A stretch of 64,000 nucleotides of DNA from Takakia lepidozioides (taxonomy: Eukaryota > Plantae > Bryophyta), in the NCBI GenBank assembly GCA_030704615.1, contig CM060733.1, positions 14,570,001-14,634,000 on the forward strand, read 5' to 3'. The notes under the pieces were generated by a model, which worked only from the letters and a program-made list of their open reading frames with translations, had not been told where the DNA came from and ran no database searches. Both the position numbers and the translations under genes were made by a program. Position 1 is the first letter of the stretch. Each line of letters begins with the position of its first letter. This document shows, piece after piece, positions 11,450 to 51,800 of this stretch.

Positions 11450-11652
11450 TGGCTGTGTGAGGCTGTGACAGGCTGTGCCGCCCTGTGCTAGGCTGTGCGC
11501 GACTGTGTGACACTGTGTTGGGCTGTGATAGGCTGTGTGACCCTATGCTGGGCTGTGATGGGCTGTGTGACCCTGTGTTGGGCTGTGATGGGCTGTGTGA
11601 CCCTGTGTTGGGTTGTGATAGGCTGTGTGACCCTGTGTTGGGCTGTGATAGC
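11450..11652. repeat. Internal 30-bp tandem array (GGCTGTGATGGGCTGTGTGACCCTGTGTTG) related to the LTR array
   Basis: Six to seven visible units sharing the GGCTGTG core with 6890-7050 and 19040-19190. Confidence 0.9.
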
Positions 11653-14600: not shown

Positions 14601-17600
14601 GTTACTATTTCATCCTGTAGACTTACAGTGGCTGGTTCCTCTAGGATATCAATCTCTCCTTCCCTTTCCTCATAAAAATGTGGTGGGTAACTATTTATTT
14701 CCTCCTCAATTGGGGTTGTTGTCACTGCACCACAGTAGATACTTTTTAAACAACTCAGGCCTTCTAATTGCATCTCTGCAACCTGTTCCCACTCTGGGTG
14801 TGCAGCGAACAAAGTAGCTTCCTGTTCCTCATCCAGTCCTTCTTTCCAATCATACTCTCTGACCCCTCTTGGTCTTCTTGTAGCAGATAGTCTTTCAGAT
14901 TTCTTAGTGGTGATTTGTATCTTGTTCAACCCATCCTGCACAGTCAGTAACTGTGAATTCCAATCATGAGGACACTTTGGCCTGTTTCAGCCATGGTCTT
15001 CCCAACAATAAGGAATAAGCTTCCAGGACTTCATTCATCTTCAACACAGTTACTGTGATCTTAAAGATCATCTCTTGAATCTGGATTTTAACTCCTCTGA
15101 TCAATCCCAATGGCTGTACACTCCTTTGGTCTGCCATGGTTACTGTAAATGGGGCTGGTTTCATGTTGTTTAGACCTAGCTTCTGCCTCAATTGGTCTGT
15201 CATGATATTCACACCAGAGCCTCCATCTATCAGTACATCTGCCAGCTCTGTGCTTCCAATTCTCAACTGGATAACTGGCATAGAATCATCAAAATCCATG
15301 ATTGTTTCTTGCCCTTCTGGCCTCACATTATAACTGGTCACCTTGCTGTTCAGGTCTGTGTTCTCTGTCAAATGGGCAATCCTGTTGATTGCTTGATACA
15401 GCCTGTGTCTACAATAAGGTGCCACAGCTAATAGCTGTCCAATGGTAATTTCCACCTTGGACTGGCATATCACTTCAGCCAATGTCCCTTCCTTACCCTG
15501 CACTTCTGCAGCTTCCCTCTTTCCTTCTTCCTCACTGACTTCTTCTTCTCCTTCAGAGTCTGAGGAGTCTACCATGGGAATATCAGTACTCTTCTGCATT
15601 TCCCGTATGGTATCCGCCACTTCCTTGTGCAGTTCCTTCTCATCTCTCCAAGCCTCATCATCTTCAGGCACATCACTGCCATCTTCATTATCATCAACTT
15701 CATCTTCCACTGGAGGTACTAATTTGGTTCTGCTTCTTGTTACTATCATTGTACTCACTTCCGGTACAATACATGGCCTAACCATGTGGGCTGCCACTAC
15801 TGGCCCCTCATTCCCAGGAGCTCTCATCTCATTCTGGTGTCTGATCCAGAATGGACAAGCCGCCTTACGATGTCCTGCCTGATTACAATAGTAACACAGT
15901 TCTTCTCCATTGGGTCCTCGCCCTTGGTCTGCTCTGGGATTATTTCTGTAATCCTGATTCCCTGGCTGGTAATTCCCTCTTGGATTACCCTGATAGCCAC
16001 CCCTGGGATGTCCCTGGTAATTCCCTCTTGGATTACCTCTCCTTTCCATGCCATTGTTATAACCACCTGTCCTACCATAGTGGTCTTGATCATTGTTTCT
16101 TCTTGGCTGGGGTTGCACTTGATGCACCCTTATCTGCCTAGGCTCTCTTACTGCTGTTCTTCTGTTGTAGTAACAATTCTCAGTAGAATGGTTATCCATT
16201 TTACAGATAGTGCAGTGTTTCTCCTTCATGTGGCATTCAGTAGTGGTGTGGCCTTCATTCTGGCATTTTGCACACCAAACACCCTTCCTCCAATGTGTTG
16301 CAGCCTCTGTGGCATACTTTTTCAAGATTTCTTCTAATCTCTTCTCATAATTTTCCCTCTTCATTTTTTCCTTCTTTTTACTCTTCTTCTTATGCTCCAT
16401 CTCCTCTTCTTCTTCTTCTGACTCATCCTCAGAGTCCTCTTCATCTCTTTTCTCCTTCCTGAGCATTCCCAACTGCTCAATTCTGTTTGCTGTTTCAAAT
16501 GCCTCCTCCACTGTATTGTGGGGTAACATGTCTAGTTTCTTTTGCAACTCTGGCCTTAGTCCATTCACAAACCAAACCTTCTGCAATCCTGGTGCTGGTA
16601 TAGCAGCCAACTTTTTCATCATCAACTCCATTTTCTCCATATACTCTTCAACAGTTTCATGCTTCTTCTGCTTCAGCTGCTGTAAACTCCCATACACTTC
16701 ATCCTCAGTTTTACTGGTCCTGAACCTATTTCGGAAAGCTGTACTCAATCCATTCCAGGTTAGGAAATAATTATCAGGGAATCTTGCATACCATTCACTG
16801 GCTTTCTTTATAAGTGAACACGGAAACAGTCTCATCTTGGCATCATCGCCATTCTCATTGTTCACTATACACATGTGCTCAAATTGGCTAATGTGTACAT
16901 CAGGATCCCCTTTCCTTGAATATATCGGAAAAGGTGGTTTAGCCCGTGTTGGTTGTAACGCCATCTGCGACCCTACACCCTGCCCCCTGACAGTTGTTGG
17001 CCCTTTGGCTGATGCTGGTCCCTGTGGACCTGTAGTATTTGTGGTGGTTCTTCCACCAATTACTGGCCCCTGAGCCCTTCCTGCTCCTAGCCTTTCTATA
17101 TTCACAGTATTCCCAGCCTCAGTTGCACTACTTTCCACACTCCCTGTCCCCCCAGAGCCAGATCCAGGTCTTTCGCCTGATCCCTCTGAGCCGACACCTT
17201 CGTTGGTCTGTGATCCAAGTGCTCCACTTGATCCAGGTCCAACGGGTTGGGATGTCCTGGTTGTAGTCTCAACCTTAGCTGCTGGGTCTACTTCTTCATA
17301 TTCTTCCTCTTCCAATTTCTTCTCTCTATTTTCATCCTCCAAGTTCTGCCCTTGGTTTTCTTCTTCTTCACTCATGTAACTATTTTGTAATAATGTTGGA
17401 GAGTTTGAACTCTCCGCTGGTTCTGCATCCTCATCTTCTGCTCCCGAAACTGGAGTTCCTGCTCTTGGTGTTCCATGCCAACTCTTATCAAAGATTTCTG
17501 CCAAATCTTTTATCCAGGGATGTACCTCAGATCTTTCATCTCGTGGTTGATCTTCTTCCTCTGCCAAGTCCCTTAATCTTTCTTGCAAAGAAAAAGAAGG

Positions 17601-17783
17601 TGTGGTATCCAACTCTAGCTCCTCTAGTATAGGTGATGTACTCCCTGATCTCAATGGTGTGAGAGGTCCAGATGATTCCCCAATGTCTATTCCTCTCTCC
17701 CACAGGTATGGATAATGAGCTTTCAGATAACTTTCTCTTTTTGCTGAATATCTTTGGAGTCTAGCTTCTCTTTCATCACTCAT
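11543..17783 (-). CDS. Element B gag-pol polyprotein with several 1-bp frameshifts
   Basis: Capsid-like region, three CX2CX4HX4C knuckles, protease DGGSGVNI, RT (LRVCVNYKKLN, DGFSGYNQ, MPFGLCNAPATFQR, FLDD), RNase H (CDAS, NYSTTERE), integrase (HHCC, WGLDFVG, SDQG, GPY). Confidence 0.92.
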
Positions 17784-18500: not shown

Positions 18501-19295
18501 GACCTGCAGCTAGTGAATCATTGTTGGGTTTCCAATTATATTCCTTATCAGTTTATATTCCCTGTTTATCATGACCAGGTATCTTTTTAAGCGTCAGATT
18601 GCTTCTTGGGCCCCCTGATTTCATTCATACATAGCTTCACTCAAGTCTCTCAACACAAGGTGTTTGTATCGGATGAGAATCAGATTAATCATAATCGGAT
18701 ACATGCTGATGTCCTAACTTCTCTAATCTATCCCTCTAAGTAATCCTACATCTCGTACTAACTCTGTCCTATAGTATCTCATTCCTCCTCGCCAGCTTCC
18801 CTTCCTTCGATCTTAGTCCTCCCCCAGGAGTGATCTCCGTGGCAAAAGTCCCCCAGCAGTGATCTCCATCCCCCAAAAGTGTTCCCCAAAAAGTGATGCT
18901 CTCCCGTCTCCGCTGCCCGCTTTATCTCCTTCCCCCCTGTTCTAACCGTTTTCCTTCACTAACCGTCCTCCGTGAATTACATGTTCCCCGGCAGATGTTG
19001 TTCCCCACAGTCGTTCCCTGTCATGATAACCGTTCCCTACGACTGTGATAGCTGTGACTGACTGTGCGACTGTGACGGCTGTTTCGGGCTGTGTATGGCT
19101 GTGACGGGCTGTGACTGTGACGGGCTCTGACGGGCTGTGTATGGCTGTGATGGTCTGTGACTGTGTCGGGCTGTGACTGGCTGTGACGGGCTATCTCAAA
19201 AATTTAAGGGTACCCCTCAGAACCCATAGAAGTGTCTAAGTCTCAGACTCCACAGAACCCATAAAAATGCCTAAGTCCCAGACTGCCTCCTAACA
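18393..19295 (-). repeat. Element B 5' LTR
   Basis: Direct repeat of 6244-7151; followed on the minus strand by the PBS. Confidence 0.95.
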
Positions 19296-24900: not shown

Positions 24901-26715
24901 GCATCGCGGCCTAATCGTCGTTCTTACCACTACACTACCCCTTAAAACTCAACAACTCCCTCTTGTAATATTATATTTAAGGTGTTTTAACCCTTAAGTT
25001 CCCAAACGACCTGAATCGGGTCACTTTGAATTTGCAGTTCGACCTAATTTTTGCAAATCTAATCTGATGGGCCCCACTCCTGATGCTTTAATGACAAGGG
25101 ATTTGTCTCGAGTATGATGCAAAAAACAAAATTAAAAAAAAAAAAAGCTACGACCTACAAAAAATATCTTAGATCTCTCATTTACGTTTTGGGGCCTGAA
25201 AAGGGCTTGTTGACCGCTGACGTGGCAGGTAAACAAGCCCAAAACAGATTGCACTCCAAAGGCCATTTTTGGCAGAAAATTAGCAATTTTGGAAAAAGCA
25301 CTTCACCTTGTGGTGTGTGAGCATTACATACACACACCCACCATTGGCTTTTAAAAAATTTGTAGAAAAAAAAGTACTTCATTTGGAGGCACATTTTCTC
25401 TTGTCAATTTTGAGATTTCAACCCCCATGTAAATGCATACATAGCAACCATAGGTGAAAAAATCAGTTGGACCTGCAATTTAGTGGGGTCATAGCCACTC
25501 CACTATTGATTTGGAAATGGTGGGTCTTGGGGCAAGCAAAATTGGATAAAGCTAGGTTTTGATTTGGTCAAACCAATTTCTTTCTCATTTTTTCTTTGGG
25601 ACCTGATATTTGAGGTCCGGGCCAACGCTATAATCTCACAATTTCCACGGTGGACTTGGCTCATTTTTTGGTTTGTCATGCATAAATGAGCTGGGCCCAT
25701 TGCTATAAGGTTGGAATCTCCGGATGATTCTTGGTAGGTTTCAAGGGGCAATTTACTGCAGCTGGGTACCCAAAATTGGTACAAAGTCAAAAAAGGGCTT
25801 GGGAACTTAAGGGTTAAACCCCCCTCTGTATGAATAATGGTGTACATGGGGGGGTTTAAAATACCCCCTCCTGTGCACGCACGTGGCTGGTACATTTAAT
25901 GAGGAGTGCACCCCCCAGGGGAAGATTCAAACTCTAAATTAGGAGGATTCTCGCCGCGGGTGCAAGCCAGATGCTTTCATTTCTCAAATCGTCAACGCAA
26001 GGTTGATTTGCATCACCCCCCATGGAGAAAAATAATAAAATAAATAAATAAATAATAAAATAAAATAATAAAATAAAATTGAAGTCGTATGTCTGTCGGT
26101 GTATGTCACGTCATCAATCGTGTTGTGCGTGCGTCTGCCATTTGTTGCATTCGTTCCTCAAACTCATTTATTCATTTGCGAACACATCAAGTCACATTCA
26201 AATGAACATTATCGGAAATCAACCTCGTGTTAACACAAGGTTCATTTCAGTTCTAGGAAATCAACCTCATGTTAACACAAGGTTGATCTCTGCGGACGCC
26301 CTAAACCCTTAACCCATCTCACCTTCAGATGGTGAAATCCCAGAGTTATAGGCTCCACGGTTATAGGCCCACCATCTTTGTGGTGACGTGGCACGACCTT
26401 GGGTGGGCTCACGAGGGGCTCATGTCACGTCAGCGCTGTGAGCGTAGGCTCACGCCACATCACCATTGTGTGAGCGTACGCTCATGCGGTAGCGTCGTTG
26501 TAGCTTGACGAGTGAGAGGGAGGACAACGGTTCTTTTTTAATTAAGATTGAACTAAGAGTGGAGGTTGCAGGCTCTGACGTGGTGGGTTCCAGCCAATTA
26601 GTTGTGGGCATTCTTGTATCTCCCAGTTTGCAGGTGGTGGATGGTCATCCAGTCTCGGAAGCACCTGCAGCTCCTGTCGTGCGTGTTCCATTGTTGATTC
26701 CATGAGTTTGACCTT

Positions 26716-30232: not shown

Positions 30233-33232
30233 TCATGTCTCACCCAAGAGACCTGCACAAAGTTGTGCACGCTCATTTCGGAGCATAGCAATCTCCATGC
30301 GGATGCCTTCATCTCCCTGTCCAGCACCCTCTGCTATGGTTTGCTCCAATGTTGCAATAATTCGCTCTATGCTCTTGATCTGTCCACAAGCACACTCACA
30401 TGAGATTCTTTGTAACTATTTTTCTAAATCTCCTCCAAACCCCACATTTTACAGCTATCAGACCACTCACATCTCTTATTCTCAATAAACGCAAGATTGA
30501 AAATGGCCAACATGTCACGCAATATTCCCAAAGGTGGCACTATCCGAGCCTCTTGATCTTTATGCTAACTTTGGTTGGGTCATATATATATTCCCTCCGT
30601 ATAGCACTTTAGCTTACTATGGTTGTTAGATGTGGTTTAACATTCCAAAATTGACGATCTTAACCTAGCCTCGAGTTTACTCTTGTTCAACCGTCTTGGT
30701 CACATAAATCTAATATCCATGGCTTGAATGCTTCTTTGATTTGCCCGGGCATAGCGGAAGCTTTTATACAGTTGCGTAATGTACCAACTACCATAGAGTG
30801 GAGCCTCTAGGCATGGAGCAGATTTGGAGCCTCCAGGCATATGCCTAGATCCATGTAGACGATTTTCATGTTTTAGAGAACTCATGTTTTATACTCAGTT
30901 ATAAACGCAGTATAAGAGCAGGAGAGGTATGATGACGATTTAATGGTTTAATTTGACCCCACATTTCAATATAGCCTTAGGGATATTCAACCTTGCGATG
31001 GGGCCATCGGCGCATGCCATTTCGACGACAAATCTTTTTAAGAACAGTGGGACAAATGCCAAGTTCTTTGGCGGCGGCATTGATTGGCAGATGGAAATGT
31101 TGTGCCAAATCCGTCATTTTTAGCTTTCCTGTTCTCTCCCTCTGCACTTCAATGAGTTCCGTTTTCAGCTCTTCCATCTACCTTCTTTCAACTTAGTACA
31201 TGATACATGTTAACTAGTTTATGACACCCATTTGCTTAAGGTAATTAGCATTTCTATTTTTATACTTTAAAGTAGTTTGAAACTTCAAAGAATTATGTAT
31301 GCAATGATAAGACCTGGACTTTCTTGAGCAATAAAGACCAGGAAAATGAATGGATCGCATATTTGTCATTCTGATTTTTACAATCCTAAAAATCATATTG
31401 AAGTTCCACGCATCTCTTGAAAGAGCAGCATGATGTATGTTTGGGGATACCATGTATGCAATGGACGCAAGCATGTGGCATGGGGAGGATGAAGGACATA
31501 AATTATCAATTGTTTTTAGCATTTGCATGATCAAGGGGCAATCCATGCCGCTATTTCATGCATATAGACAATATCTGATACGACCTGTTGGAAAAGAAAG
31601 AAAGATTGAAACAAAGAGAATTTGCACCTGAGCAGCAGCATTACTCTTAGGGGGCTTGGCAGGTGCCACAAAATTACCATCAGCATGATCAGTGCTGTCC
31701 ATGCTTCCACTACGGTGCATTTTGCTCTGCCCAGGTCCAGCCTTTCCATATGCACACCCGCTGTTTGAATAATCTGACCCTATAAATCCACGCATGTATC
31801 AATGGAATTTTTGAAACATCTTTTGGAAGGCCCAATTTAAGGTAGATTAAGGAAGGAAGTCTCTTGCTGAAGCAAATCATAACTTATGGTGTTACTTCAC
31901 CCCAAAGAGCTACGACATTACGTGAAAACCTTCTAGTATTATATAGGATTATGTGCACTAATTTGGCGAACACTGATTTTGTATAGCAGAACATATATTG
32001 CTTTATATTTATTTTGTTTGTATGGATGTATGTGGCTATGGATTCCTATTGCATGACAAAAATAACAGACTAAACAAATTCGAGAAAGGCAAGTGTATGC
32101 ATATTAGAACAGACATGGAAAAAAACAATTCGTGGCCAACAAGAACAGGAAGAGAATTACCAGAAGAGGTACACAGTAGGTCTGGAAGGGCAACGTGGCC
32201 CATTTGCTTAGGCATGCATGCGGCTGATGCGTTCATTAGGTGCTCTGATGCCATGCCCATGCAAGGGCTTCCGTCCGAGCCTGTTGACAAAGAGTCGTGT
32301 CGCAACACAAAACCTTCTTTTCTTCTTAACAAGCTATATTGGAGTAAAAATTGCTTCACATACTCTGCATTTCCTACTGGAAACCTGCAATAACAGACAC
32401 GATTCATGAGCATAGAGATGCCTAACGTCTACAATGTATTATAATACTCTTGAGTCATGATTTTGAATGCAATTTCACTCAAGGGTTCTAATGTAAAAAA
32501 ATGAATCATTAGTCCTTAGTCCATTCACTGTCTGAATGGAACAGTTTGTACCTACCTCCTAGAAAAAAAAATGTAGTGACAGCCCTGAGCCATACACTCC
32601 CAACTTATTGGAATCAAACCTATAGTACATTTGAGTTTCAGTTTCCCACTATTCTTGCATGTTTTGGCAAACTTCTGCATTCTACTAAGCTTTATCCAAT
32701 GTCGAGCATTTCATTGCAAGTACCAATGGAGTTGTTGAACTTCCAGGTGCAGCTAACGATAACTCATATCTCAACAATAGATCTTTACACAAGATATAAA
32801 TCTATTTAAGATTATGACATAGTGGTTCGATGTGGAACAATCCATATTGATAATTCACACACTATTTACTAGCTTATGCTTTGAATCCCAATATACCAAT
32901 GCCTATATGTCTTGAATGTGGACAATACTTTCTTTCTATTAGCTTTAATGGCTTACTAACCACCCCTCCAAAGAAAACCAACAACTTACTCAACCATTTG
33001 TTGTTCAAAAGATGCAGGAAACCCATCATCAATACAAAATCGAGTCTGCAATACAGCATGATAACTTTGGCCATCACACCCATGAATCTCAAGCTTTGTG
33101 TCTTGGACCCCTGAACCACATGTCATGTCCAATTTTTTATAAGATTTTATGTTGACAGTATTCATTGTAAAAGTGCAAATCCAAACATTGTTAGTTGAGG
33201 GGAGCACATATGCAATTCTAAAATAATACGTA

Positions 33233-33286
<54 letters not shown>

Positions 33287-35353
33287 AGACGCCGGCCATG
33301 GCCGGCGTAACTAAGAGCCACTTCGCCTTGCAGCTATTGCCCCCTTTCGGGGGTGGGCCCTATACAATACGTAGCGAATTTAAGTTTATACTACTTAAAC
33401 ATTGAATTTTTATACAACACATTGTCCATAGACCCCAATCCAACTCCACGATATGGTTCATGTATAATCAATATAAAACTGTCTACATGAGCCACATGCA
33501 TACATGGGGCTTTTTGAAGTTTTGCCGCATCAAATAGATCCTACAATGTCATCAAACCAACATATTGGTCTAGTCTATTATCAGTTGGTTGTGTTGGCAA
33601 TGCAACACAACTTGTATTGTTCTCGTGTTCATATTTTTTCCTTCTACTAAGAGATCTTAACCCAAATTTATCTAGGGATAACCTAGCATATGATATAGGA
33701 TTGAGTATAAATTCACACATAATTAAGTTTGCAGACGTAGCTTACCCTAAGTGAATAAATGGGGACCACAAAATCACAACAAGCAATAGAGAAATTGAGA
33801 ACTACGACATATATATAGACAAAATAACATCGTTTAAACAATGCTATACCCACTACCTTTGTCTAACCACTAACATTAACTCAAATCTTCTCCCTTTTCT
33901 AAAAACCATAATTGGCTTCATAATGGATGAAATCACTTTGGACGTCAAAGTTTATCATGCATCCATGAATGCTGGTTGATGAAGATTAGCTTTGCAAAAT
34001 CCATAATGCATCGATAATCAACTCCTACCATCATAGCAAGTTTGTAGGTTCTAATTCAACAATGGGAGGATTAATTGGTGATTTTAATCTTGGGAGACTA
34101 AATTAGGGTGATCTAGGGTACTAGGTAATCAAAAGGGGGTCAGGACAAGCATTGTTCTTGGTTTGAACTTCTCTTTGGTTACTGCATCTTGAATGTGCAA
34201 AAGTGACATACTTGTCACCAAGTTTCTTCCTATGTCGGATTATAAGGGAGTGGGTAAATGAGAACTTTGTGCATTGCATAAGTATTTTAATGACCTAAGA
34301 CTCATGAATGCACATATAGAGAATATAAGTATGGCAAAAATTATTCCCCCCCTAGACTGTATATAATCACTTGTTAGTCTAGACAGGTGTAATTTAATCA
34401 AGAGAAAATAAAATAAAATTGATGTATAAACATGTGGATCATGATACAACAACACAACATTATACACTGTCAAAACTCACGTGTTGATTGTGCCTCTGGG
34501 CTTGCATTGTATAATGTTAGGAAGGCGTTGAAGATCAATACATCTTATTTACTTTCTCAAAAGCTTTGACATCTCAACAAAACTAACAAACATTTGGTGG
34601 GGGTGAGAGAACACCATTAGAATGGATAATGCGACGCAGAATTTGGCAAGAGTCACATTGCAATTGTTGTTGATTATGTGGTTGGGTGGGATTAGGCTGA
34701 AGTGGCCCCTCATGTGACATGCCCCAGTCCGAGGGGGCACCAGAACACATCATGGGGTTTGCACCACCAGAGGTTGAGGCCCCGTGCTCCATACTCACTA
34801 ATGCTCGTTCTTCTACCTCCATAAGTCCACCTGGCTCCCCTCCCAAGTAACACCCTGGTGTGAACATGGTAGGAGGGAAGTTCATGGGAGAGAGTCTACT
34901 TCCTGGCGGAGGAGGATAGGATGACATGTTCATCCTCAAAGGGGAGATCGGCGGGTTAGGAATGAAGTTGTCATGTGAGCCACTAAAGAGAGCAAAAGAA
35001 TCTTTGGCAATATCGGCATCAATCTCATCAAATGCAATGAGCTCCCCATTAAGTGTATCCTCAACGCAAGTGCCTTCTGTATCAGTGCATTTGTTGTCAA
35101 ACAATAGCGTACTGAAATCTAGTTCCGACCCTCCTTCGCCCCTCCCGCTCCTTCGAGAATTGAAAGGAGGTAGCGGAGTGAGCATGTTGAAAGTGGACGT
35201 AGGAATATTGAAGCCAGTGAAATTGAAGAAAGGCTCATCGGGGTTGGCTTCTTTGGGAGTTTTCATAAACTCGTTAATATCAAAACGAGGGCTGTTGAAT
35301 GAGTTAAGGACCACACCATCACAATTGGGGGACCCTAATTGCCCTCCTGCCAT
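30233..35353 (-). CDS. RKD: RWP-RK domain transcription factor, RKD type, 510 aa; exons 34615-35353, 32990-33110, 32161-32384, 31628-31779, 30992-31141, 30233-30379
   Basis: All five introns are GT-AG with consistent phases (total 1533 bp); RWP-RK motif HFHLPINAAAKELGICPTVLKKICRRNGMRRWPHRKIKS; upstream CDSCQILRRIIHSNG-KLEIHG..YHAVL..VKQFL domain seen in RKD-type proteins; no PB1 domain, so not an NLP. Confidence 0.92.
33236..33365 (-). mobile_element. 130-bp structured SINE-like insertion with (TC)n tail in RKD intron 1
   Basis: Exact 11-bp TSD AATACGTAGCG (33225-33235 and 33366-33376); (GA)n tract at one end; second copy of the core at 40449-40527. Confidence 0.8.
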
Positions 35354-36934: not shown

Positions 36935-38849
36935 TCAATTGCTCATAAAATGAGTAATTATCGATGAGGCCAAACTAAAATGCAATGTAGCATTCTCAAT
37001 TGTTGAAGAATTGAACACCTAAAAATGGCTTACAATCACGGAAGTTGAAAGGTGGATTTAGCTATTATCTTTGAGGAGGATGTCATAAGACAACATCAAG
37101 TTGGAAATATACAATCGTAATAGAGATTGGCTCGAATTTTTTTTTTATAAAAAGTATACCAAAATGTTCGGCCAAAAACGTTTTCGAGGATTTATCGGCC
37201 GGAAGCCTAACATAATAAACATTGCAAGATTGAGAGAACGAGTGCAAAAAATTGGTAGAAAACATAGGAAGAAAGATGTACAAACGAAGAGTATCAAAAC
37301 GACAAAGAGGTGTACTAAAACATAGAAGTTCAGATTGTATTTTCTACTGTTTTGCTGTATCCATCAATGACAACGCTGCAATCTTACAATAATATGTACA
37401 AACATATTTTTCTTTCTTATCAAATACAAACAATTTCACATTGGTAAGACTAGTATGCTCAATCTTAGAAGACCCATCGGTGCTCTCTTTTGCTGAGGAA
37501 TCTGCCTCGGCCTTTTCAACTAGATATGAAGATTCAGAATCGAAGAAACACTGATATTGTGGGCTGCATCATTTGCGTCCAAGACAGGAGCTAAGTGACC
37601 TTTAGTAGAATTGGCATCTAAATTTAGCACAACTCAAGTAAATAAATATTTTTTGTACATATTGAAAATTACAACTCTGCGTAATACATCAAATGAAGGT
37701 ACAATGACAATAGAAACTCAGCTAGATTCATTGAACTTTAGTATTCAGGTTTCTACCAGTTAATTGATCACATCTTCGACTTGCCTCTAAGCCATTTTTT
37801 ATAATTATGAAAATGATTTGAATAATATGAACCAAAGCTTTGGATACTACCGCACTTTGTTCCCTTCTTGAATCAATATATATTATTATTCCCTTAAAAA
37901 CTGGCAGAACATTTGCTACTCAAATATGACTTAACTGTATAACCTTCGGTAAATATTATCTTCCACTAAGGCTCACATTCCCTCCGATTAGTCATTTCTT
38001 CTCGCTATTCTCATGTTCAACGCTTCCAGTAGTATGTGCGTTGTTCTTCTTCCTGAAAAGTTGACATTGATTGATGAATTATCATGGTTGATCTTTCTCT
38101 TATAAGAGAAATTAATGGAGCTTGAAACTTGAAACATGCATGTATGGATAATGGTGCTCCGCCTTCATACCATATTCACAAGTCTGTCAACAACTATTCT
38201 TCCCTCTCCACTACCTTGTTTTTGGTATATGTTCCTCGATTGGACTCCGTACTAAGATGAACTATTTACTTTTCAGATATAAACAAAATCTCATCACGGT
38301 AACAAAAAATCATCAAAAGTTTAGTTTATGCTTGGTATGACCTTGAAGCGGCACCTTATAGAAAAAATCATGTTGCCAATTCGTTGATTAAGATGCAAGC
38401 AATAATGGATTTAGATTGAAGAATGCAAATGACACGCTCTTTTATAATATAAAGTCGTTCCATTTATATTTCATAGTTTTCCTCAAAGCAATACTTCATT
38501 AGAGTTAAGATCTAAGTCAATGCGGTGATTAAGGTACGAGCGTTAAATTGCAGACCTAATTTATCAAAGCTCCCTAAAGAGGAAAGGAAGAAATAAAATT
38601 CTAATGCACAAAGAGATGAATGTCCAGATCGATGAACAATATGTGAGATATAAGGAGGCTTTGCCATTTTTTTATTGCTGTGGAGTTTTATGAAATGTTG
38701 TTATGGTTAATAATAATGTATCTTGATTCTGAAGTGATTATGAAGTGATGTTCTATTTTAAAATGAAATTTTATGTGTTTAAATTTGATATAATTACTTA
38801 TAATGACCTATCATGGAACATAAAATGATTGACAATGTCAAGAAGTTTG

Positions 38850-41040
38850 AAAGGTAAATAACTTTGTTTGTGCTCTGTCCAATACATTTAAGTGGATCCA
38901 GATTTGCATGGAAAAATAATTGCATTTGTCCAAATATGATCTGATTAAGATTGATAATCAGTTGTGTGTTCTGAAAATATTCATTGAAATTTGTGATCAT
39001 GTAATTTTGGAGTTATATATTTTTTGGATTGTTTCCTAATAGGTCTATGTTGAAGTCTCCAATGAATGTTGTTAGACAATGACGTGGAACATTACGATGT
39101 AATTCATGTAGGTGTGGTAGAAAAGATTGTAAAGACATTTTATGGGGTTTATATATTGCAAGTATGTGAGTTATTATTTTTTGGTATAAATGTTAAATAT
39201 TGCTGATATGAATTCAGCGCCATTGTATGTATGAATTTTATGGTTTTCTAGTTTCATAGTTTGATCGTATAGAAGTATCGTGTCTTGATTGTTGTAATGT
39301 GGTCAATTTTGGATTTGAGACAAAATATGTGAGATCTTTGAAGGTTGGGATCAAAATTTGTTTTGGATGTGGTGATATGTTTGAATGTACCTATTAAGTA
39401 CAAGCATATAATTTGACTAACATATCACATTTTATTTGAATTTCTATTACTTGTATGTAACCAGTTGTTTTGTTTGAATAATTTGGCAGTTCTATTTGAT
39501 TTGGGCAAGTTTCATGTCTCTTATCAGTTGCTTTGAAAGTGTATATTTGGCATTTTGTTTGTTCAAATGTGTATTGGTTGTGAGCTTGAACAAATTCATT
39601 TTTTCTTAAAGTGCAGAAATGTTGGATCAAACGAGGATTTTCCATAACAAAGTTTATTTATTATGTCTATATGCAGTCATGATTGATTTGTTAAGTATTT
39701 CAATGAATTCTTGATCAGTTTGTCACATGATTTCTTGTAATTCATAATATTTTATTTTATCAAAAATTTGTTCATAATATGTCTAGTCCATCCAATTGGT
39801 TAAAAATTCACGAGTCTTGAAATGTTGGTGGTGCTTGCTAAAACAAATCCAATAATTATACCATCTAAATTACCAAAGAAACTATATATTATGAATATGT
39901 TTAATAGATTTTAAACGTTTGTCGATGAAACTTGAAAGTGAGCATTCGGTTTTCTACGAGTGAAATTTGTCTAAAACTACCCTAGAGGTCGCTCTATTCC
40001 GACATTAATTAACTTTAAGAGAGAACGAATATTTTAAAATTGCCCTGGTAGTAGACGCAATATGGGAATAATCTTCATTTAAAAAGATGAACTTTGAAAA
40101 CAAAAGGTGGCAATATGGTAGTGAAAAAGTCAAGTTTGAAAGGGAAAAAAAAAACAAAGTTTAAACATGTTTACCACTAACCATGACTATGGTTTGCCAG
40201 AGAGTTATGGCTAACCATAACTATGATCTGCGACAGAGAATGTGAACTGTACGTGAATCTTGACATGGCCCACCTAAAATGAGAAGTACCCATGAGTGCC
40301 GAATTCCTGAAAATTTGGATGAAGCTTGAACGAAAAAATTAATATTGTGAGTAAGCCTGCTGAACCTGGCGACCTGCATGTATTTAATGATTCCGGCAAG
40401 GGTCCGTCGAAATAGAGCAGCCTCTATGGTAATAATTTTACTTGAGAAAAGACTCCGGCCGAGACCGGCGTAACTAAGAGCCACTTCGCCTCACGGCTAG
40501 TGCCTCCTTTTGGGGGTGGGGCCTATAAATAAGAAGGTGTGGGACAATTGTACTTGATCATAACTGTTTCATTAAATTGTCTCGACGATCGTCACTTTTA
40601 AGTGAGTCCATTTAAAGCTTTATTTAATGGTACCGCTAAACCTCAATGTATCGTTGTTCCAACAATGTTAAACATGACTTTTCTTGTGTGTGCCATTTTA
40701 AGGGTTTTTTTTTTGTTTTTTTTTTTTCAAATGATCAATTTTTTGGTGTACCAACGAACAAGTGCTTGTATTATAACCATTAAAGTGAAAGTGTTCCTTT
40801 TCCGGCTACCCCTGTTAAATATTAAATGTAAAGATTTTTCAGAATTTCTTTGTTTTGTATACGTAACGTCATAAAATATTATACGTTGTTCATCATTTAA
40901 TGTATGAACCATTGGGACAAAATTGACGATGGCAAAATTTGATTTTTTGATAATATTGTATTTATTTGTAATTGATGATGGTAGAAAAAATCCGGATTAA
41001 TTTGGCATTCTAATGATATATTGTATTTTCGCCCACAAGC
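38850..41040 (-). pseudogene. Decayed Helitron-like PIF1 helicase plus AP-endonuclease remnant (copy 1)
   Basis: LNDEQRIIF..LHLIF..TFTL, YDQVQL..LD, FIDKRLKSIK, QAPP; then TTFIGDFNIDLL, DHIWTN and YWTEHK exonuclease/endonuclease/phosphatase motifs; many stops. Confidence 0.7.
39980..40545. mobile_element. ~565-bp insertion interrupting the helicase remnant; carries the second copy of the structured core (40449-40527)
   Basis: Helicase homology to 48300-48345 breaks between YDQVQL and VLD exactly around this segment. Confidence 0.6.
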
Positions 41041-41109
41041 ATATTAGTAAGGGAATTTCAACATAAGTTGTTGTTTGTATTTTGAAACATATCCACATGA
41101 GAGACGGTG

Positions 41110-41590: not shown

Positions 41591-41899
41591 GGTATGAATG
41601 CAGACAACTCTCCAACTTTCTTGTTTCCTTGTAATGTTTTAAACCTCAATGACTTTGAATGATGGATAAAAAATAGTTGTTCTACTCAATTGTAATGTTG
41701 TTCATTCTTCTAGCCAAATTTGGACCACTTTCAATAAATTTTGTTAGAGTGGTTGGGATTAAAAAAAAAAAACTTTTACTTAGTAATACTTGCAAGTTTT
41801 TATATAATCTCCTAAAAACTTTTCTATTTTTTTTTTTGGATTGGTTTGGATTTTTTAATGACATTTTAATAGGTACTTAATGTTATTATTTCATAATAT

Positions 41900-43950
41900 T
41901 TGTTTCTTATCTAACATACTTTAACTTAGCCTAAGCCGAATACCACAAAAATATCTTTGTAATGTTTGAAGCTTGACACTCGGAATTAATTGTTTTTCTA
42001 ACTTTGAACAATGGTTGGAATATTTAATTAAAAATTTGTATAGGTCCTAAATACTCTCCCATCACTCCTGTCATTCATCCTTTTGTAACCCTATAGCCTA
42101 AAATATAGTTGCTACATTTGAAGCTCAATTAATTACGTTTTTCAGCTTACATGTATGACAGAGTCATCGAGATATTTACTTGGAAATTCTTACTCTTCCA
42201 TATGTTTTTTTTTTAACTTGAAGTACTTTTGTTTATCCGAAACCCTATACCGCAAAACCTCATTCTAAAAGTTCATTCAAATCAATTTTTGAGGTTTGGG
42301 TATAATATAAATTACAATGGTTAGAATATTATATTGACTTGATTGTTGAATGTTTTAAAAATTATAGGTCCTAAATATTCATGCATACTTTTATGTGATT
42401 CATATTTTTATTTCTTATAAACTTTATGCCCCTAAAACCTTATATCCATGTTTGAAGCTTCTTAAGAAAGCAAATTCATACTTTGGAATACAATGCATTC
42501 AAGGTTGGGATATTTGATTGAAAGTTTTTATAGGTTCCATATATTGTTGTTGTTTTTTGAAAGTTTTATAGGACCTCGTACACAAACTGTCGCTTCCATA
42601 TTAGTTTCTCATTGATATTTTTGTCCACCTCATATCGATGTTTGAAGCCCAAGTCCCGTGTTTGTTTTTGTTTTTTTTTCCTCCCATTTCTAAAATTTTC
42701 AGCTTTGGGGTATAACAGAGGGGACAAATTTTAATCCCAACATGTATAAGATTGAATTAGCTCATTAAAATAATTGCTTAGTACTACTTGATAGCAATTT
42801 TGTATGGAACTTCCTTATAAGCACTTTTCAACCCTTTGTTTACATTGAATAGATATATTTGTTTTGGCTAATACTAAGCTTTGGGGAAGTTTATAGAATT
42901 TTACAATATCTAATTGAGAGATTTTATATGTCTTAATTACTCTTGTAAATTTGTTTGTCATTGAATAGTACCAAATTTGCTTACCCTAAATCCTAGTATG
43001 TCATCTTTTTTTATTGTTTGAGGCTCATTATTCTTTCCCCCCCATTGATTCACTTTATAATAAGATAAAGTGGTCTGGATTTTTAATTGATATTTTTGTA
43101 GATCCTAAGTTCCATTCTTTCATGTTTGTTCTTACCTATACTTTAGTTTAATAGCCTAAGCCCAGTACTCCAAAAAATATCTTTGTAATGTTTGAAGCTC
43201 ACTCAAAAATTTCTTTTCTAACTCTGGGGTTGCATACTACTAAGAGTTGTTGGAATATTGAATTGAAATTTTGTATTAGTCCTAAACAGTATCCCATTAT
43301 TTGTATCATTCACACTTTTGCTTGTTCTAAACCCTAGCATTCCCTAAAATGTAGTTTCCACATTTGAAGCTCATTGATTCATTTTATTCTAGCTTATATG
43401 TATGATAGAGTCCTCGGGATATTTACTTGGAAATTCTTATATGTTCTACACACTCTTCCAATTTTATTTTGTACTTGATAGTACTTTTACTTCTCCAACC
43501 CATTATATCATAAACCTCATTCAAATATTTGAAGTACATTCAAATCATTTTTCCAGCTTTGGGTATAATACAATTATGGTTAAAATATTACACGATTGAA
43601 CGCATACCTTTCTTGCATATTTTGTGTGATTCATACTTATAATTTTTCTAAAACTTTATGCTCCTAAAACTTTATATCCATGTTGGCTTAAAAAAACACA
43701 TTCTTACTTTGGGGTACAATGTATTCGAGGTTGAGATATTTGATTGAAAGTTCTTATAGGTTCGATGCACTGTTGTTTCTTTTTTCCCTCTTTTCATACT
43801 TTTTTCTTATCTTAAACCCTACAATACCTCAAAACCTCATATCCCGAAGCGAGTCATTGAAAAAATAAATGTACATAGTTTTGGAGTACATTGATATATT
43901 GGTTTGGAGAAATTATATCGATTAAAAATGTCTAGAAGTTCCATAGGTTC
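41900..43950. repeat. Degenerate AT-rich tandem array (roughly 170-bp subunits) with a ~1.2-kb higher-order duplication
   Basis: Recurring TTTGAAGCT, TTTGGGGTATAA, GGTTGGAATATTT and TTTATAGGTCCTAAATA motifs; 41925-42560 aligns with 43150-43780. Confidence 0.75.
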
Positions 43951-44619
43951 CATACATTTTTCCACATTTTATTAATGTTGATTCGGATTTCTCATGTGAG
44001 TAAGATTTTATTTTATTTCCGTGTACCGTTTTGATTTTGAATACCTTTTAGTTCGCCTTCGGGCCTTGTATTCATGTGTTAGTATTCATAAATTTATATC
44101 CGTGGTTATTCTTTTGCAGGAGTCAATTTGGATTCGAGACCGACATACTTTATTTTACAAAATAAAGTATTTTGTCTAAGTTCGAGTCTTCATTTTTACA
44201 AGCTTCTAGTTTCAGGGCTAGGGTGTTTGTGGACTATATATAGTGCATTTGTATTGGGGATAATAGACTTATTGACAACATGTACTGGGTAATGATGTCT
44301 AATGGATACTTGTGCTAATTAGTATATATCCTTTGCATTGACTAAATTTGTATATCATTCGACTTTGATGTCGACGTTTAATGAATTTGGAGTCATGCAA
44401 ATTGTGTTATTAATATGTATCATTTACATTGTCTAATGTATATCATTCGACTTTGATGTCGACGTTTAAAACATTTGGAGTCATGCACATTCACTTGAAA
44501 AATAAATCTTGATTCATTGCTTCATAATATTGTAATTATTCAATTTAATTTAAATGTAAAATTATATTAAGTTTTGTCCGGATTTAAGCCAAAAGTCCAG
44601 AATTAGTTAAAATTGAGTT

Positions 44620-45988: not shown

Positions 45989-48470
45989 TGTCAATGTTGA
46001 AATCTCGAATGAATGTTGTGGGACAATGACGTGGTTCCTTACGATATAATTCATGCAAGTATAGTAGAAACGGTTGTAAAGGCATTTTAGGAAGTTTATA
46101 TATTACAATTATGTGAATTACTTTCTTAATATATGAATGTTAAATGTTGCTGATATGAATTCAACGCCATTGTATATATGTCATAGGTTTCTAGTCTCAT
46201 AGTTTGGTCGTACAAAATTGTCATACAGTGATTGTCGTTACAACAAATGAGCGATAATTTATAGCTATTGGTGAATGCGGACCAATTTGGATCTGAGTGA
46301 ATAACGTTTATTTTATTGAGACATAAGATGTGAAATGCTTGAAGGTTGGGGTCAAAATTTGTAATGTTGTTTTAAAGATCGAGTGTTTAATGATTGTATA
46401 ATTAAGAAAGAACGTCATAATTATTTTATAATGGGTATTGTTAAAATATATTTTGCAGTTGTTCGGAGGTTTTCCATTTCATGTGCAACTAATTTGTCCA
46501 CATGGAAGTTTTATGGTTCAAGTGGATTCAATAAAAATAAATGTTCTTTTTGACGTATTATAGACAAAGTTGTATATGTTAAGCTGTGTTTGTTACACCT
46601 TGGGATCAAAAGCCAATCTATCAAGTGTGAGTCTTTGTGCTCGATGTATTGTTCGAGCAAATTGAATGGGGAATTGTATACGAGTGATAATTATGTGTTG
46701 AGAATTATGACCTATTCGAATGTCTTTTGCTTTGGCTGTTATTGGAGTCTAACTTCATGCTACGTCATGGACTAAATCATATAAATTGGAATGGACAAAT
46801 CTAGTTTCCTGACAAATTTTTGCATCATGAAATTGTATCCAAATTAATTCGGAATGCGTTTGGATGTGTTGACATGTTTGAATGTACCTTCTGCTCTATT
46901 TACTAGTCCAACATGTGTATTATAATTACCGGCGCATAATTCAATTAACATATCACATTTTATTTGAAGATCTGTGTGTAAACAGCTGTTTTGTTTAAAT
47001 CATTTGGTAGTCTATGTGATATGGGCAAATTTTATGTGTTATATCAGTTGCTTTGAAAATGTATATTTGGCCTTTTGTTTGTTCAAATGCGTATTGGTTA
47101 TGAGCTCGAACTACTTTATTTCTAAAACATAAGTGTGGAAATGTTGGATCAAATGAAGGTTTTTGTACCATAATTTATTTATTATGTCAACTTGTGTTTA
47201 TGTTTGTTTGGTTGTTTAAAATTTGTTAAGTACTTCAATGAATTCTTGATCAGTTTATCGCATCACTTGATGGCGGGAGAGAAGAAAGAAGCTTGCTTAT
47301 TTACACCTTGTCTTATTATGTCCTCCAATATAATTCGTAACATTTGATCTTATCTTGCCAAAAATTTGTTCCGAACATATCCAGTCCATCAAAAATACTT
47401 AAATCAGCCAGACTTATTAGAACATATTTGTCTTGCAGAAGTTGCTCAATATGACCTTAACAACTTTAAACACAAACGTAAATCAACAATTATTCTTTGG
47501 GTCCATTACAATGTTCATCATGATGCTGGGAATTATTATAGAGAACAACTATAGCTATTCTTCTCATTTTGAGGGTCAGAACAATCTCAATAAAACAATC
47601 ACATAACTTAGCATGATCCATATACAAAGAAACAAACTACAATTCAACAAATTTATAATAAATACACATTCAAAATTTTAAATACTGAATCAACACAAAA
47701 TTGTGATTGACATTCTTTACAAAATATTGTTAACGACCTTGCAGAACAAAATAATGATAATGTATCGATGAATATGTTTCAAGATGCAAACGACAACACT
47801 CACGTTCAAATTCCCTTTACTAATACAATTGGAATTGAAAAATATGATGTACCGTTAGAATGCCAAATTAATCATGCATTTCTTCTACCATCACAAATTT
47901 AGAACAAATACAATGTCATCAAAAAATAAAATCTTACCATCGTCAGGTTTTTTTGCAATGGTCCATACATTAAATGATGAGCATCGTACAATATTTGATG
48001 ACGTTATGTACACAAAACGAACAAATTCTGAAAATCTTTACATCCGTTTTTAACAAGAGAAGCTAGTACAAGAAAAACTTTCACTTTTAATGGTTATAAT
48101 ACAAGCCCTCGTTCGTTGGTACATTAAACAAGATAAAAACTGTGATCCTTTGAAACAGAACCCTTAAAATGGCATATACCGGAAAAGCCACGTTTAACTT
48201 TGATGGAACAACAATCCATTTAGGTCAAGCGATACATTTAAATAAAGCTTTAAATGGACAAACATCTTTAAGTGACGATCATGGAGACAGTTTAATGAAA
48301 CAATATGACCAAGTACAATTATTAGTTTTAGATGAAATTTCGAAACAGAATTATGCTACTTTCATCAATAAGAGATTAAAATCTATTAAATAATTAAGAT
48401 GTTATAATTACCGGAGATTTTTATCAAGCACCACCAATTCAAGACTTATGGGTTTTTAAACCAAAAGTTT
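45989..48470. pseudogene. Decayed Helitron-like helicase plus AP-endonuclease remnant (copy 2), with 47391-48470 inverted
   Basis: 45989-47390 (minus) parallels 39050-39790; 47391-48470 (plus) has LEHICLAE, NYYREQL, MAYTGKATFNFDGTTIH, LVLDEIS, GDFYQAPPI. Confidence 0.8.
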
Positions 48471-48819: not shown

Positions 48820-51800
48820 GGCCATTTGCCTTGAGGGCAGGGGGTCGGGACACAAGAGGGGCTGCCCCTGTGGTGGGGGCAGTGGCAGCGATAGGTATGG
48901 GGGGTTTTCCTTGAGTGCCCAAGGCACTCAAGGAGGCGGAGGCGCTCACTAGGTGGAGCCCCGCACACCGGGTCGCGGTGGGGGTGGCTCCACAAGGGGT
49001 GCTGGTAGCTTAGCGGGACTTAGTGGGGGTGACATAGGACTCACCCTGGGGCGGAGACCTCGTGGTGGGAGTCGTGGGGAGTCTTGGGACTCATCACGGT
49101 CCATAGGGGCCGTGGTGGGTGGGCCAAGACTCACTGCGACTCATCACCGGGAGTCGAGGGTGTTCGTGGTGGTTCGCCATAAAATGGCATGGTTGTTTGT
49201 GAAACCCCCGCGGACAGCTACAGAAGTATATATAGTGAGTAGTAACCCCGAGAACGGTGCAAGCCCGTTGGTGACCAAAAACTAGTGAGTACGCGAACGA
49301 GCCGGAAAGCGACCAAAGAGTGGGGAGCTGTTCCGGACTGCCAACTACCAAAGGGAATTCCGCTGGTTCCAAATCGTTGGAGGGTTCTTTGGGAGATCAA
49401 AGGGGGACCGTTATGCCCCGGTGAGCAGCCGGAGCTCCAAGTTGTGCCCGGCGGCCAGGTTGGGAGTTAGGCGCGCGCATCAAGCGAGTAACTATGACTT
49501 GAGGGGGGAGCTTACCGAAGTGAGGTGCGCGACACTTGGTATCAGAGCTTAGAGTTCAGTACGCGATCGTCCTTGGGATTGGCCTCATCATGGGGTCGGG
49601 CAAGCCAAAGCGAAAGCGGAACGGCCCAAAAGATGATGATCCTGGTGAGCCCGATGGGGGCGACATGTCACCGAGGCGGCCGTTTGAGGAAGCGGTGCAT
49701 GTTTCCGAAAACGAGGCCGCTCAAGAGCGGGAGGAATCTGAGGAGTCGGAGCCTGAGGAATCCCTGAGAGCTCCGACCGACCAACAGATGCCTCCCATGT
49801 CGGCAGCCTTTTGGGAAGGATTGTTGGCGCAATTTGGCGGGACGTTGAAAGACGTGTTGGAGGCGGCTAATGCCACTTCCACTAAGGCAAAGTTTAAGGT
49901 GAAGCCTAAGGAACCCGACACCTTCGAGGGCGTCTGAAATCGGAAGGCACTCAACACCTGGCTCTTGGAGCTAGAGCAGTACTTCCGGGCGGCCAAGTTG
50001 AGTGACGAGGATCGGGTGGAAGTGGCTCCCACCTATTTGAGGGGCTATGCTCAACAATGGTGGCAGAAACGCCTTCACGACCGAGGTCCAAGCCCGGAAA
50101 CCTTGAACTGGAGTGGGTTCAAGGAATTGATGAAGAGGCAGTTTGTGCCCCTCAACGCGTCCTGGCTCGCCCGAGACAAGATGAGGAATTTGAAGCAAAC
50201 AGATGACATTCGGGGATATGTCCAGGCTTTCAATGTGCTGTTGCTCGAAGTCGCGGACATGGCAGAACCAGAAATGGTCTTCAACTTTGTGGCGGGACTG
50301 GCCCCATGGGCCAGGCGGAAGTTGGAGGAGAAGCCACCTAAGACTTTGAACGAGGCAATTGAGAGGGCTGAATGTTTCTCGGATGTCCCTAAGGGTAAAA
50401 GACAAGGCCGTACGGAGCTGAACCACAAGAAGACCCGGCGGGAAGGTGACTCCTTCCGACCGGAAAAGAAGTGGGATAGGCCACGCGGCGACAATGGCAC
50501 GTGGAAATCGAAGGGAGGGCCTTCACAAGTCAAGGCGGCACCCGGTGCTTCGAAATGAAAAGCGGGTGGAGCGGCCTATGGCGGACAGAAGGCGACCTTT
50601 GATGGAGTGTGTTTCAATCGCGGGGAGCCCGGGCACATGGCCAAGAAGTGCACGAAGCCCCGGCAATTGAACATGACTCGGGCGACCACAGAGCTGTCAG
50701 AAGATACCATCAGTCGCTTGGTGGAAGCGGTGGTCGCCAGGACTTGCAAGGTAGGCAAATTTTCTTGTGAGTTGTATCACGAAACTGATGCCTTACGTAA
50801 AGGGAGTCAGTTATTGTTCGTGGATGGGATAATATCCGGAACTAACGTGTCGTTGTTGGTAGACACAGGAGCGTCGCACTCCTTCATGACACCGGCAACG
50901 ACACAAAAGCTGGGACTCCCGACAAGTGACGTGGGGGCCTCTATTGAGGTGCGTTCTGCCAAAGGAGAACCGCAATTGGCGACAAGGTTGGCGTTTGATG
51001 TTCCTCTTCAACTGGGGAGTTGGGAGGGACGTGAGAACTTCACCATCTGCGAGATCGATGGAGTGGATCTCATTTTGGGGATGACCTTTTTGAGCAAATC
51101 CGGAGCATAGATGGCCACAAGAGAGTAGTCACGCTGCTATGTGGGAATGGTGACGAGGTCTTACGAGTGTCGGAAACGCCCAAACCCGTGGGAGGGCGAA
51201 TAAACCTCCTGTCAGCAAGGGAGTGGGCCGTGGAGGAGGCACACGAGCCCTAGTTTTTGCTCTACATTAGAGAAGTGAAGGGAGAAGGCGCTGGGGAGCC
51301 GAGCCGAGATTGGATCAAGGGGATTTTGGAGAAATACCAGGATGTGATGCCGGAGGATTTACCAAGCGGCTTGCCACCGTGAAGAGGAGTTGACCACAAG
51401 ATTGAGGTGATACCAGGATCAGAACTGCCTGCCAAGGTGCCCTACCGGTTGAGCCACAGAGAGTTGGTCGAGCTGAAGACTCAGCTCAAAGATCTAATGT
51501 CAAAGGGGTACATCCGGCCGAATAAGTCACCTTACGGAGCCCCGGTGCTATTCGCAGACAAGAAGGAGGGGACGCTGCGGATGTGTGTCGATTACAGGGC
51601 TTTGAATAAGGTGACTATAAAAAACCGGTACCATTTGCCAAGGATCGACGACCTTTTCGATCGGTTGGCAAGAGCAAAGTATTTCAGCCGGATCGATCTG
51701 CGCTCCGGCTATCATCAAATTCGAGTGGCGGAAGGAGATGAGGAGAAGACCGCGTGCAGGACAAGGTATGGTTCATATGAGTTCTTGGTGATGCTTTTTG

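Follow-up and report, generated by a model that had tools for sequence, protein, structure and literature searches.

Stringent LINE/SINE pairs and other comparable systems

The eel elements UnaL2 and UnaSINE1 form a stringent-type LINE/SINE pair with a common 3' tail. LINE reverse transcriptases of the stringent type recognize a stem-loop in the 3' UTR (PMC5135761), and the principle of LINE/SINE pairs with a common 3' tail is set out in PMC5135761 and PMC3747384. Green algae harbor SINEs that combine heads of unknown origin with LINE tails and microsatellite 3' repeats, among them Chlamydomonas SINEX-1/2/4_CR, whose tails are of the RandI/Dualen type (PMC3747384). For land plants, a review describes tRNA-derived SINEs, L1 elements with (A)n, and RTE elements with (GTT)n (PMC9033089). 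At the other end of the transcript, R2 and L1Tc/NARTc carry HDV-like ribozymes at their 5' ends (PMC3774820, PMC3185411, PMC3383444).

In the window, the whole 64-kb stretch of DNA that was analyzed, two loci carry a short element, and both are probably retrocopies, made by target-primed reverse transcription from the 3' end of a single RNA with a LINE-type tail. The element resembles the stringent LINE/SINE pairs in that a short simple repeat comes after its 3' stem-loop, in target-primed reverse transcription, and in target-site duplications (TSDs) of variable length; it differs from them in having no tRNA-type head and a (TC)n tail, and we infer its partner LINE. Compared by description only, Chlamydomonas SINEX-1/2/4_CR are likewise green-lineage, non-tRNA, LINE-tailed elements with a microsatellite tail, whereas they are longer and possess a head, and the element here is a tail module only. 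Variable 5' ends, a 4-nt microhomology (in copy 1), and an intact 3' end with its tail are also features of 5'-truncated LINE insertions joined via microhomology, but unlike ordinary 5'-truncated LINEs, the two copies represent no more than about 80-96 nt of template, which is extremely short, and both end just 5' of a structured module. The R2 and L1Tc/NARTc ribozymes are comparable as compact structured RNAs of about 77-80 nt at a retroposon 5' edge; in contrast to them, the element has no double pseudoknot common to both copies, no Rfam match, and an imprecise 5' end. As in the reviewed land-plant SINEs, non-autonomous, LINE-dependent copying is expected, but the absence of a tRNA head and the (TC)n tail make this a type missing from that review of SINEs and LINEs (PMC9033089). 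If a tail-only family were confirmed, a non-tRNA, (TC)n-tailed retroposon type would be added to land plants.

Two inserts, their duplications and their tails

Copy 1 is a 130-bp insert at 33236-33365 with the element on the minus strand, and the exact 11-bp TSD claimed for it in the earlier note is present on both sides (33225-33235 and 33366-33376; 11/11). A repeat like this one occurred in only 2/5000 shuffled flank pairs. The (TC)n 3' tail on the minus strand, also described previously, corresponds to a (GA)23 tract on the plus strand, for which TRF reported period 2 and 23 copies at 33241-33286. Given that this tail is enclosed by the TSD, it arrived together with the insert. The features of copy 1 are as follows:

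33225..33235, no strand: left TSD of copy 1, 11 bp, exact repeat of 33366-33376 (shuffles 2/5000)
33236..33288, minus strand: (TC)n repeat interrupted once by an irregular TTTC, forming the 3' tail of copy 1 (sequence; TRF)
33289..33308, minus strand: terminal hairpin, a perfect 20-nt palindrome with 8 GC-rich pairs and a 4-nt loop (sequence and fold)
33314..33361, minus strand: proposed three-way junction, as in the minimum-energy fold of copy 1
33362..33365, minus strand: GTAT, the 4 nt with which the copy 1 insert begins, located 5' of the closing stem (sequence)
33366..33376, no strand: right TSD of copy 1, exact repeat, its 4 insert-side nt reading TATT on the minus strand

At the target-side end of the copy 1 tail, about 5-6 nt of CG repeat adjoin the target. 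This short stretch between the TC repeat and the target has no explanation under the LINE-tail reading.

The second copy, with GCC-GTGA-GGC as its small hairpin, was found at 40446-40528, close to the position given in the earlier note (40449-40527). The insert measures 98 bp (40446-40543), has a 12/14 TSD, and is situated 2-4 bp in from the end of a 7.8-kb unit whose inverted arms measure 550 bp. At 48309-48324, a paralogous site has a single copy of the 14-mer and no insert, and the TA just before this 14-mer is shared with the left flank of copy 2. The TSD and this empty site together indicate that the copy 2 insert extends 16 nt further 5' than TATAGG. The features of copy 2 are:

40432..40445, no strand: left TSD of copy 2, 14 bp, 12/14 against the right copy (shuffles 21/5000)
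40446..40527, minus strand: core of copy 2, with homology to copy 1 extending from TATAGG to the hairpin, and its 6-nt tail, CTTTTC (104.9 bits to covariance model R1)
40528..40543, minus strand: 16-nt 5' extension of copy 2, present neither in copy 1 nor at the paralogous empty site
40544..40557, no strand: right TSD of copy 2, 12/14 against the left copy (shuffles 21/5000)
48309..48324, no strand: unoccupied paralogous site in the other arm of the 550-bp inverted repeat

Near 48.4 kb, in the paralogous arm, a candidate decayed copy was rejected, since shuffled sequences reach local alignment scores like its 24 (shuffle mean 20.7, maximum 30).

What was copied in both cases is a 3' end composed of an approximately 80-nt GC-rich module, with a strong GC hairpin as its last part, followed by a (UC)n tail. 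Both insertions are in AT-rich target DNA, and neither target is a TC repeat. Target-primed reverse transcription, proposed in the earlier note from copy 1, gains from the presence of two independent inserts, each with a TSD and a pyrimidine tail, the tails differing in length (about 50 nt in copy 1 vs. 6 nt in copy 2). The characteristics of retrocopies are thus found at these loci: TSDs (11/11 and 12/14), a simple-repeat 3' tail, a constant 3' end, and a variable 5' end. A DNA-level element, such as a MITE, a non-TIR Mutator-like element, or a Helitron fragment, could also be considered, since duplications of 9-11 bp are made by Mutator-like elements as well and copy 2 sits just 2-4 bp inside the end of the 7.8-kb inverted-arm unit. 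However, no terminal inverted repeats of the element were seen on reading the sequence, the duplications are unequal in length (11 vs. 14 bp), and a variable simple-repeat tail at one end combined with variability at the other is the signature of reverse transcription from a 3' end. We therefore regard a DNA-level origin as exceedingly improbable.

Fold of the module and ribozyme searches

The minimum-energy fold of copy 1 is a three-way junction plus a hairpin, and every motif listed in the earlier note was found again (stems, GAAA and GCAA loops, and, at 33289-33308, the perfect 20-nt palindrome). In the junction, a closing stem of 7 bp encloses two hairpins, one of 5 bp with a GAAA loop and one of 3 bp with a GCAA loop, together with an unpaired GAA. 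Nevertheless, the evidence for the three-way junction fold is weak. Compared with shuffled sequence, the junction is not unusually stable in either copy (z about -0.9 each), and for copy 2 the junction fold (-16.6 kcal/mol) is 11 kcal/mol worse than the best fold, a long hairpin (-28.0 kcal/mol). Over 23 pairs, the comparison of copy 1 with copy 2, which comprises two sequences only, gave 0 double changes, 2 one-sided changes, and 3 pairs broken in copy 2. The small hairpin, previously read as keeping both its pairing and a GNRA loop, differs by U.G to C-G, an alteration on one side, with 0 compensatory pairs between the two copies. With a junction that stands out little from shuffles, is not the favored fold in copy 2, and has no compensatory change, the earlier claim of a selected RNA structure gains little from these two sequences.

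The terminal hairpin is the sole part of the fold that exceeded the shuffles (z -4.0, 0/500), and it is a candidate RT-binding stem-loop. Recognition by a reverse transcriptase, one of the two functions suggested in the earlier note, is the most plausible function; the 80-base tail is most likely the handle gripped by the copying enzyme of a LINE.

The other suggestion was an undescribed self-processing motif. On this reading the module would be a new ribozyme that cleaves itself, or would be processed by a cellular enzyme such as RNase P, and a cut at the base of the closing stem would release it from longer transcripts. In line with this are the compact fold of several helices, with GNRA loops, found where the common sequence has its 5' edge, and the precedent of ribozymes that set retroposon 5' ends (PMC3774820, PMC3185411). 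Comparison with Rfam, a check proposed in the earlier note, matched no family: Rfam 15 yielded no match at gathering score across the whole window, matches at E<=10 around the element were at chance level (E of at least 1.2), and the hammerhead, HDV, CPEB3, twister, pistol, and hatchet models had no match at the element at E<=10. A hammerhead is defined by a three-way junction whose core strands are CUGANGA and GAAA and which is cleaved after NUH; CUGANGA is absent from either strand of either copy, as the earlier note had already observed. A type III hammerhead would, moreover, cut between the 5' strand of the closing stem and the first hairpin, and thus inside the element and not at its 5' end. 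For HDV-like ribozymes, defined by a nested double pseudoknot (P1, P1.1, P2, P3, P4) starting from the cleavage site, a permissive home-made descriptor returned 1782 and 169 loose solutions in the two copies, respectively, with none at homologous positions in both, a result qualified by the decay of copy 2. Copy 2 also retains 16 nt upstream of the supposed cleavage site. The ribozyme idea therefore receives no support from the tests made, and we consider it very unlikely.

Equally little credence is given to the broader proposal that the 80-nt module is a new 5'-end-defining RNA, either self-cleaving or a mimic recognized by a cellular endonuclease, that would free a promoter-less tail element from read-through transcripts. 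If this were true, that element would spread as the smallest known retroposon, and the 16 extra nucleotides of copy 2 would mark an uncleaved escapee. A Penelope-like element was rejected on the basis of the missing hammerhead motif, the clean duplication, and the position of the tail inside the duplication.

Template length, presumed partner LINE and further copies

The two copies share 85-89% identity over 82-89 nt, including a 27-nt invariant block that occurs exactly twice in the window vs. 0 expected. The earlier note had homology beginning at the same TATAGG in both, from which a defined 5' end was proposed. Homology does start near TATAGG in both copies, but the inserts begin 0 nt (copy 1) and 16 nt (copy 2) upstream of it, and a fixed start of the RNA is not supported. 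The last 4 of the 16 extra bases of copy 2 are TATT, identical to the target bases adjoining copy 1, and BLAST homology between the copies continues to 33369 and 40531, respectively. This match at the copy 1 target suggests that the template reached upstream of TATAGG; the 4-nt microhomology at the 5' junction of copy 1 implies a longer template.

The small size of both copies and the start of homology at about the same place could instead reflect a self-sustaining non-autonomous retroposon (a non-tRNA SINE or "headless" element), in which an internal promoter or RNA processing would set the 5' end at TATAGG and the junction would be under selection. The 7-bp closing stem and an A-box-like 11-mer (10/11 match) at +38 are consistent with such an element. 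However, that motif is too distant from the 5' end for initiation at TATAGG, and the earlier statement that tRNA A and B boxes are not evident is confirmed for the B box, the A-box-like motif being the part that is present: ARAGORN found no tRNA in the window, and the best B-box match in the element, with 3 mismatches, precedes the A-box-like motif. The 16 nt by which the copy 2 insert starts further upstream, the microhomology of the copy 1 junction to that stretch, and a fold that is disfavored in copy 2 and has no covariation support also argue against it, and we consider this explanation unlikely, although less so than a ribozyme or a DNA-level element.

The two stops are <=16 nt apart and both fall just 5' of the structured module, which fits a preferred stop or a short template better than random truncation. 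Plain random 5' truncation would be an odd source of two copies out of two shorter than 100 nt.

Under the preferred reading as retrocopies of a LINE-type tail, a LINE endonuclease would nick the target and a LINE reverse transcriptase of the stringent, tail-recognizing type would prime on the (UC)n tail beside the terminal hairpin. This hairpin, and perhaps also the upstream junction, may be the handle recognized by the enzyme. The template would run upstream of TATAGG, copy 1 being joined at its 5' end via the 4-nt microhomology (TATT), and it could be either a full-length LINE, with extreme 5' truncations, or a short tail-only RNA of a headless non-autonomous family. In the former case, the reading frame in copy 2 would permit the TAG within TATAGG to be the stop codon of that LINE. 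If such a tail-only family propagates genome-wide, a LINE reverse transcriptase would need little RNA, about 80 nt plus a TC repeat.

Within the window, short-word BLAST and covariance model R1 with filters off both recovered two copies only. The next matches, at 25275-25356 (E 0.1) and 37466-37517, were judged to be chance on inspection. No LINE carrying the same tail was found within the 64-kb window, and the partner LINE is accordingly a presumed one. Exact 20-22-mers had no match in metagenome, viral, and prokaryote genome collections, an 18-mer had 10 matches in metagenomes with no homology outside the 18-mer in any of them, and the motif as text had no match in the literature. On the evidence of the window, the element is an ordinary product of LINE activity. 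The host genome is transposon-rich.

Insert boundaries of the two copies

The insertion itself is real. An exact 11-bp direct repeat, reached in 2 of 5000 trials of a flank-shuffle test, surrounds copy 1, which is therefore a 130-bp insert (33236–33365), and both the target-site duplication and the minus-strand orientation called in the earlier note were confirmed.

Copy 1 and its flanks (33225–33376), minus-strand reading, parts in 5′ to 3′ order
11-bp repeat
4-nt leader
48-nt segment, foldable as a three-way junction (closing stem, GAAA hairpin and GCAA hairpin)
5-nt linker
perfect 20-nt palindrome (the terminal hairpin)
(TC)n tail, about 47 nt, closing with a CG repeat of 5–6 nt
second occurrence of the 11-bp repeat

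The CG repeat (33236–33241) sits between the tail and the target-site duplication; slippage of priming on the terminal GCG of the target, untemplated addition, or later microsatellite growth are possible origins.

The 64-kb window contains just two occurrences of a 27-nt core block of the element, with zero expected. The second of them lies in copy 2 (40446–40528), a copy also recognized earlier, which is 85–89% identical to copy 1 over 82–89 nt. Copy 2 is flanked by a 14-mer direct repeat (40432–40445 and 40544–40557; 12/14 identical; 21 of 5000 shuffles), the sole direct repeat of at least 8 nt around it. The left 14-mer directly adjoins a 6-nt CTTTTC tail, and the right one lies 16 nt past TATAGG, the motif where homology between the copies begins. 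To the right of copy 2, the sequence forms one of the arms of a 550-bp inverted repeat (40546–41095 versus 48320–47769, 78% identity); its second arm contains a single 14-mer, directly after the same TA that is present in the left flank of copy 2, and no insert. The flanking 14-mers and this empty arm thus make copy 2 an insert of 98 bp, and nothing in copy 1 corresponds to its initial 16 nt. The second arm serves as an empty-site control, with left-side homology of only ∼2 nt. Given that its duplication has diverged at 2 of 14 positions, copy 2 is probably old and decaying.

The common 5′ end at TATAGG proposed in the earlier note is not supported, since the duplication of copy 2 and the empty arm place the start of that insert 16 nt farther 5′. 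The last four of these extra nucleotides, TATT, are the same four target bases that adjoin the 5′ end of copy 1, and these were part of the target prior to insertion because they fall within the copy 1 duplication. Across these two copies, the pattern is most simply read as suggestive of both templates having run upstream of TATAGG, with copy 1 joined via 4-nt microhomology. Given the copy 2 extension and the TATT match, support for a defined 5′ end is gone.

RNA fold and known RNA classes

At minimum energy (−35.8 kcal/mol), copy 1 folds into the three-way-junction structure drawn in the earlier note. Relative to dinucleotide shuffles, the whole 82-mer of copy 1 had z = −1.55, while the junction alone had z ∼ −0.9 in both copies, with 19% of shuffles equally stable; the terminal hairpin of copy 1 was exceptional (z −4.0, 0/500 shuffles). 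In copy 2 the proposed fold is disfavoured (−16.6 kcal/mol versus −28.0 for a different fold), and an A-to-C change in the “linker” completes the alternative helix that this copy prefers. Among 23 pairs compared between the copies, none changed on both sides, two changed on one side (the small hairpin has U.G to C-G, the last hairpin C-G to U.G), and three were broken in copy 2. The small hairpin does keep its GNRA loop (GCAA to GUGA) as previously noted, but its pair change is one-sided only; the other tetraloop went from GAAA to AAAA. The claim of a conserved, selected RNA structure thus exceeds the evidence, and the window offers no positive evidence for the three-way junction. Given that copy 2 is probably decaying, its broken pairs do not disprove a functional fold of the source RNA.

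The suggestion of a new self-processing motif likewise went further than the data. Rfam 15 gave no match at gathering score in the whole window and only chance-level matches at the element (E ≥ 1.2). Neither strand of either copy contains the hammerhead core CUGANGA, a lack that the earlier note had stated for the element, and no HDV-like solution remained when one topology was required at homologous positions of copies 1 and 2; the ribozyme reading is very unlikely. Type III hammerheads cleave between the 5′ strand of stem III and stem I, a cut that falls inside the element and could therefore not give a 5′ terminus at the closing-stem base. No tRNA genes were found in the 64-kb window, and the reported lack of tRNA A and B boxes stands for the B box; an A-box-like motif (10/11) is present at +38 of the element, with no B box found after it.

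Proposed priming and nearest known elements

Copies 1 and 2 are two independent insertions with one common 3′-terminal sequence, duplications of 11 and 14 bp, AT-rich, non-TC targets, and differing tail lengths and 5′ ends. The target may have been nicked by the endonuclease of a LINE, after which reverse transcriptase would prime within the (UC)n tail beside the GC hairpin; stringent-type recognition of a 3′ stem-loop (PMC5135761) is a model for this priming. The enzyme would then copy ∼80–96 nt, and the 5′ end would be joined, in copy 1 via microhomology. The template may have been a whole LINE or a short tail-only RNA; that two of two copies end within 16 nt of each other, just 5′ of the structured block, argues for a short template or a preferred stop. 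In copy 2 (40522–40543), the 16-nt extension translates as P-T-P-S-Y-L-stop when the TAG of TATAGG is taken as the stop codon; speculatively, a parent LINE could have this module as its entire 3′ UTR.

The nearest known kinds are LINE/SINE pairs with common tails, ordinary 5′-truncated LINE copies, and Chlamydomonas SINEX elements (PMC3747384), in which unknown heads are combined with RandI/Dualen tails and microsatellite repeats. R2 and L1Tc/NARTc provide a ribozyme precedent (PMC3774820, PMC3185411), but only as a functional analogy, and their defining fold was tested here and not found. We file the element as a putative LINE-tail retrocopy. The SINEs and LINEs named in a recent review of land-plant transposable elements (PMC9033089) are tRNA-derived and A- or GTT-tailed, respectively, with no other type given; if the lineage assignment holds, a head-less retrocopy with a (TC)n tail would therefore add modestly to the land-plant types.

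Further copies and window surroundings

With filters off, covariance model R1 picked up no additional copies in the window; two weak matches looked like chance on inspection. Exact 20–22-mers of the element returned nothing from metagenome, viral and prokaryote genome collections, an 18-mer had ten metagenome matches in which homology always ended with the 18-mer, and a text search of the literature did not find the element motif. No LINE adjoins copy 1 or copy 2, and 35.4–49.5 kb holds no ORFs of at least 120 aa. The window is eukaryotic and rich in transposons.

Transposon-related features of the window
2.0–2.6 kb: hAT dimerisation domain
11.5–17.8 kb, minus: Ty3/gypsy, RNase H and integrase (11543–13408), gag and protease (939-aa ORF, 14964–17783)
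20.6 and 27.5 kb: integrase fragments
50–52 kb, plus: second Ty3/gypsy, gag (49965–50558) and RT (51407–52219), ORFs broken into several pieces

The 550-bp inverted repeats enclose a 7.8-kb AT-rich unit, with copy 2 lying 2–4 bp inside its left end. This unit contains a direct repeat (41842–42558 and 43071–43784, 71% identical) and 88-bp tandem repeats (44310–44508), and is possibly a DNA transposon with long TIRs or a foldback; no clear target-site duplication was seen for it. The 12-kb minus-strand Ty3/gypsy element is flanked by two blocks (6885–7140 and 19040–19284) that have in common 10-bp tandem repeats of the CTGTGACGGG type as well as a doubled 35-bp unit, identical in both, and large ORFs without a family match lie downstream of its pol (7190–8263 and 10335–11297). 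The second Ty3/gypsy element occupies a GC-rich stretch (49536–56000; 0.51–0.54). Several tandem arrays cluster in the final 6 kb of the window, at 58161–58471, 60653–60891, 61268–61528 and 62489–62657, with periods of 47–52, 105, 102 and 84 bp, respectively.
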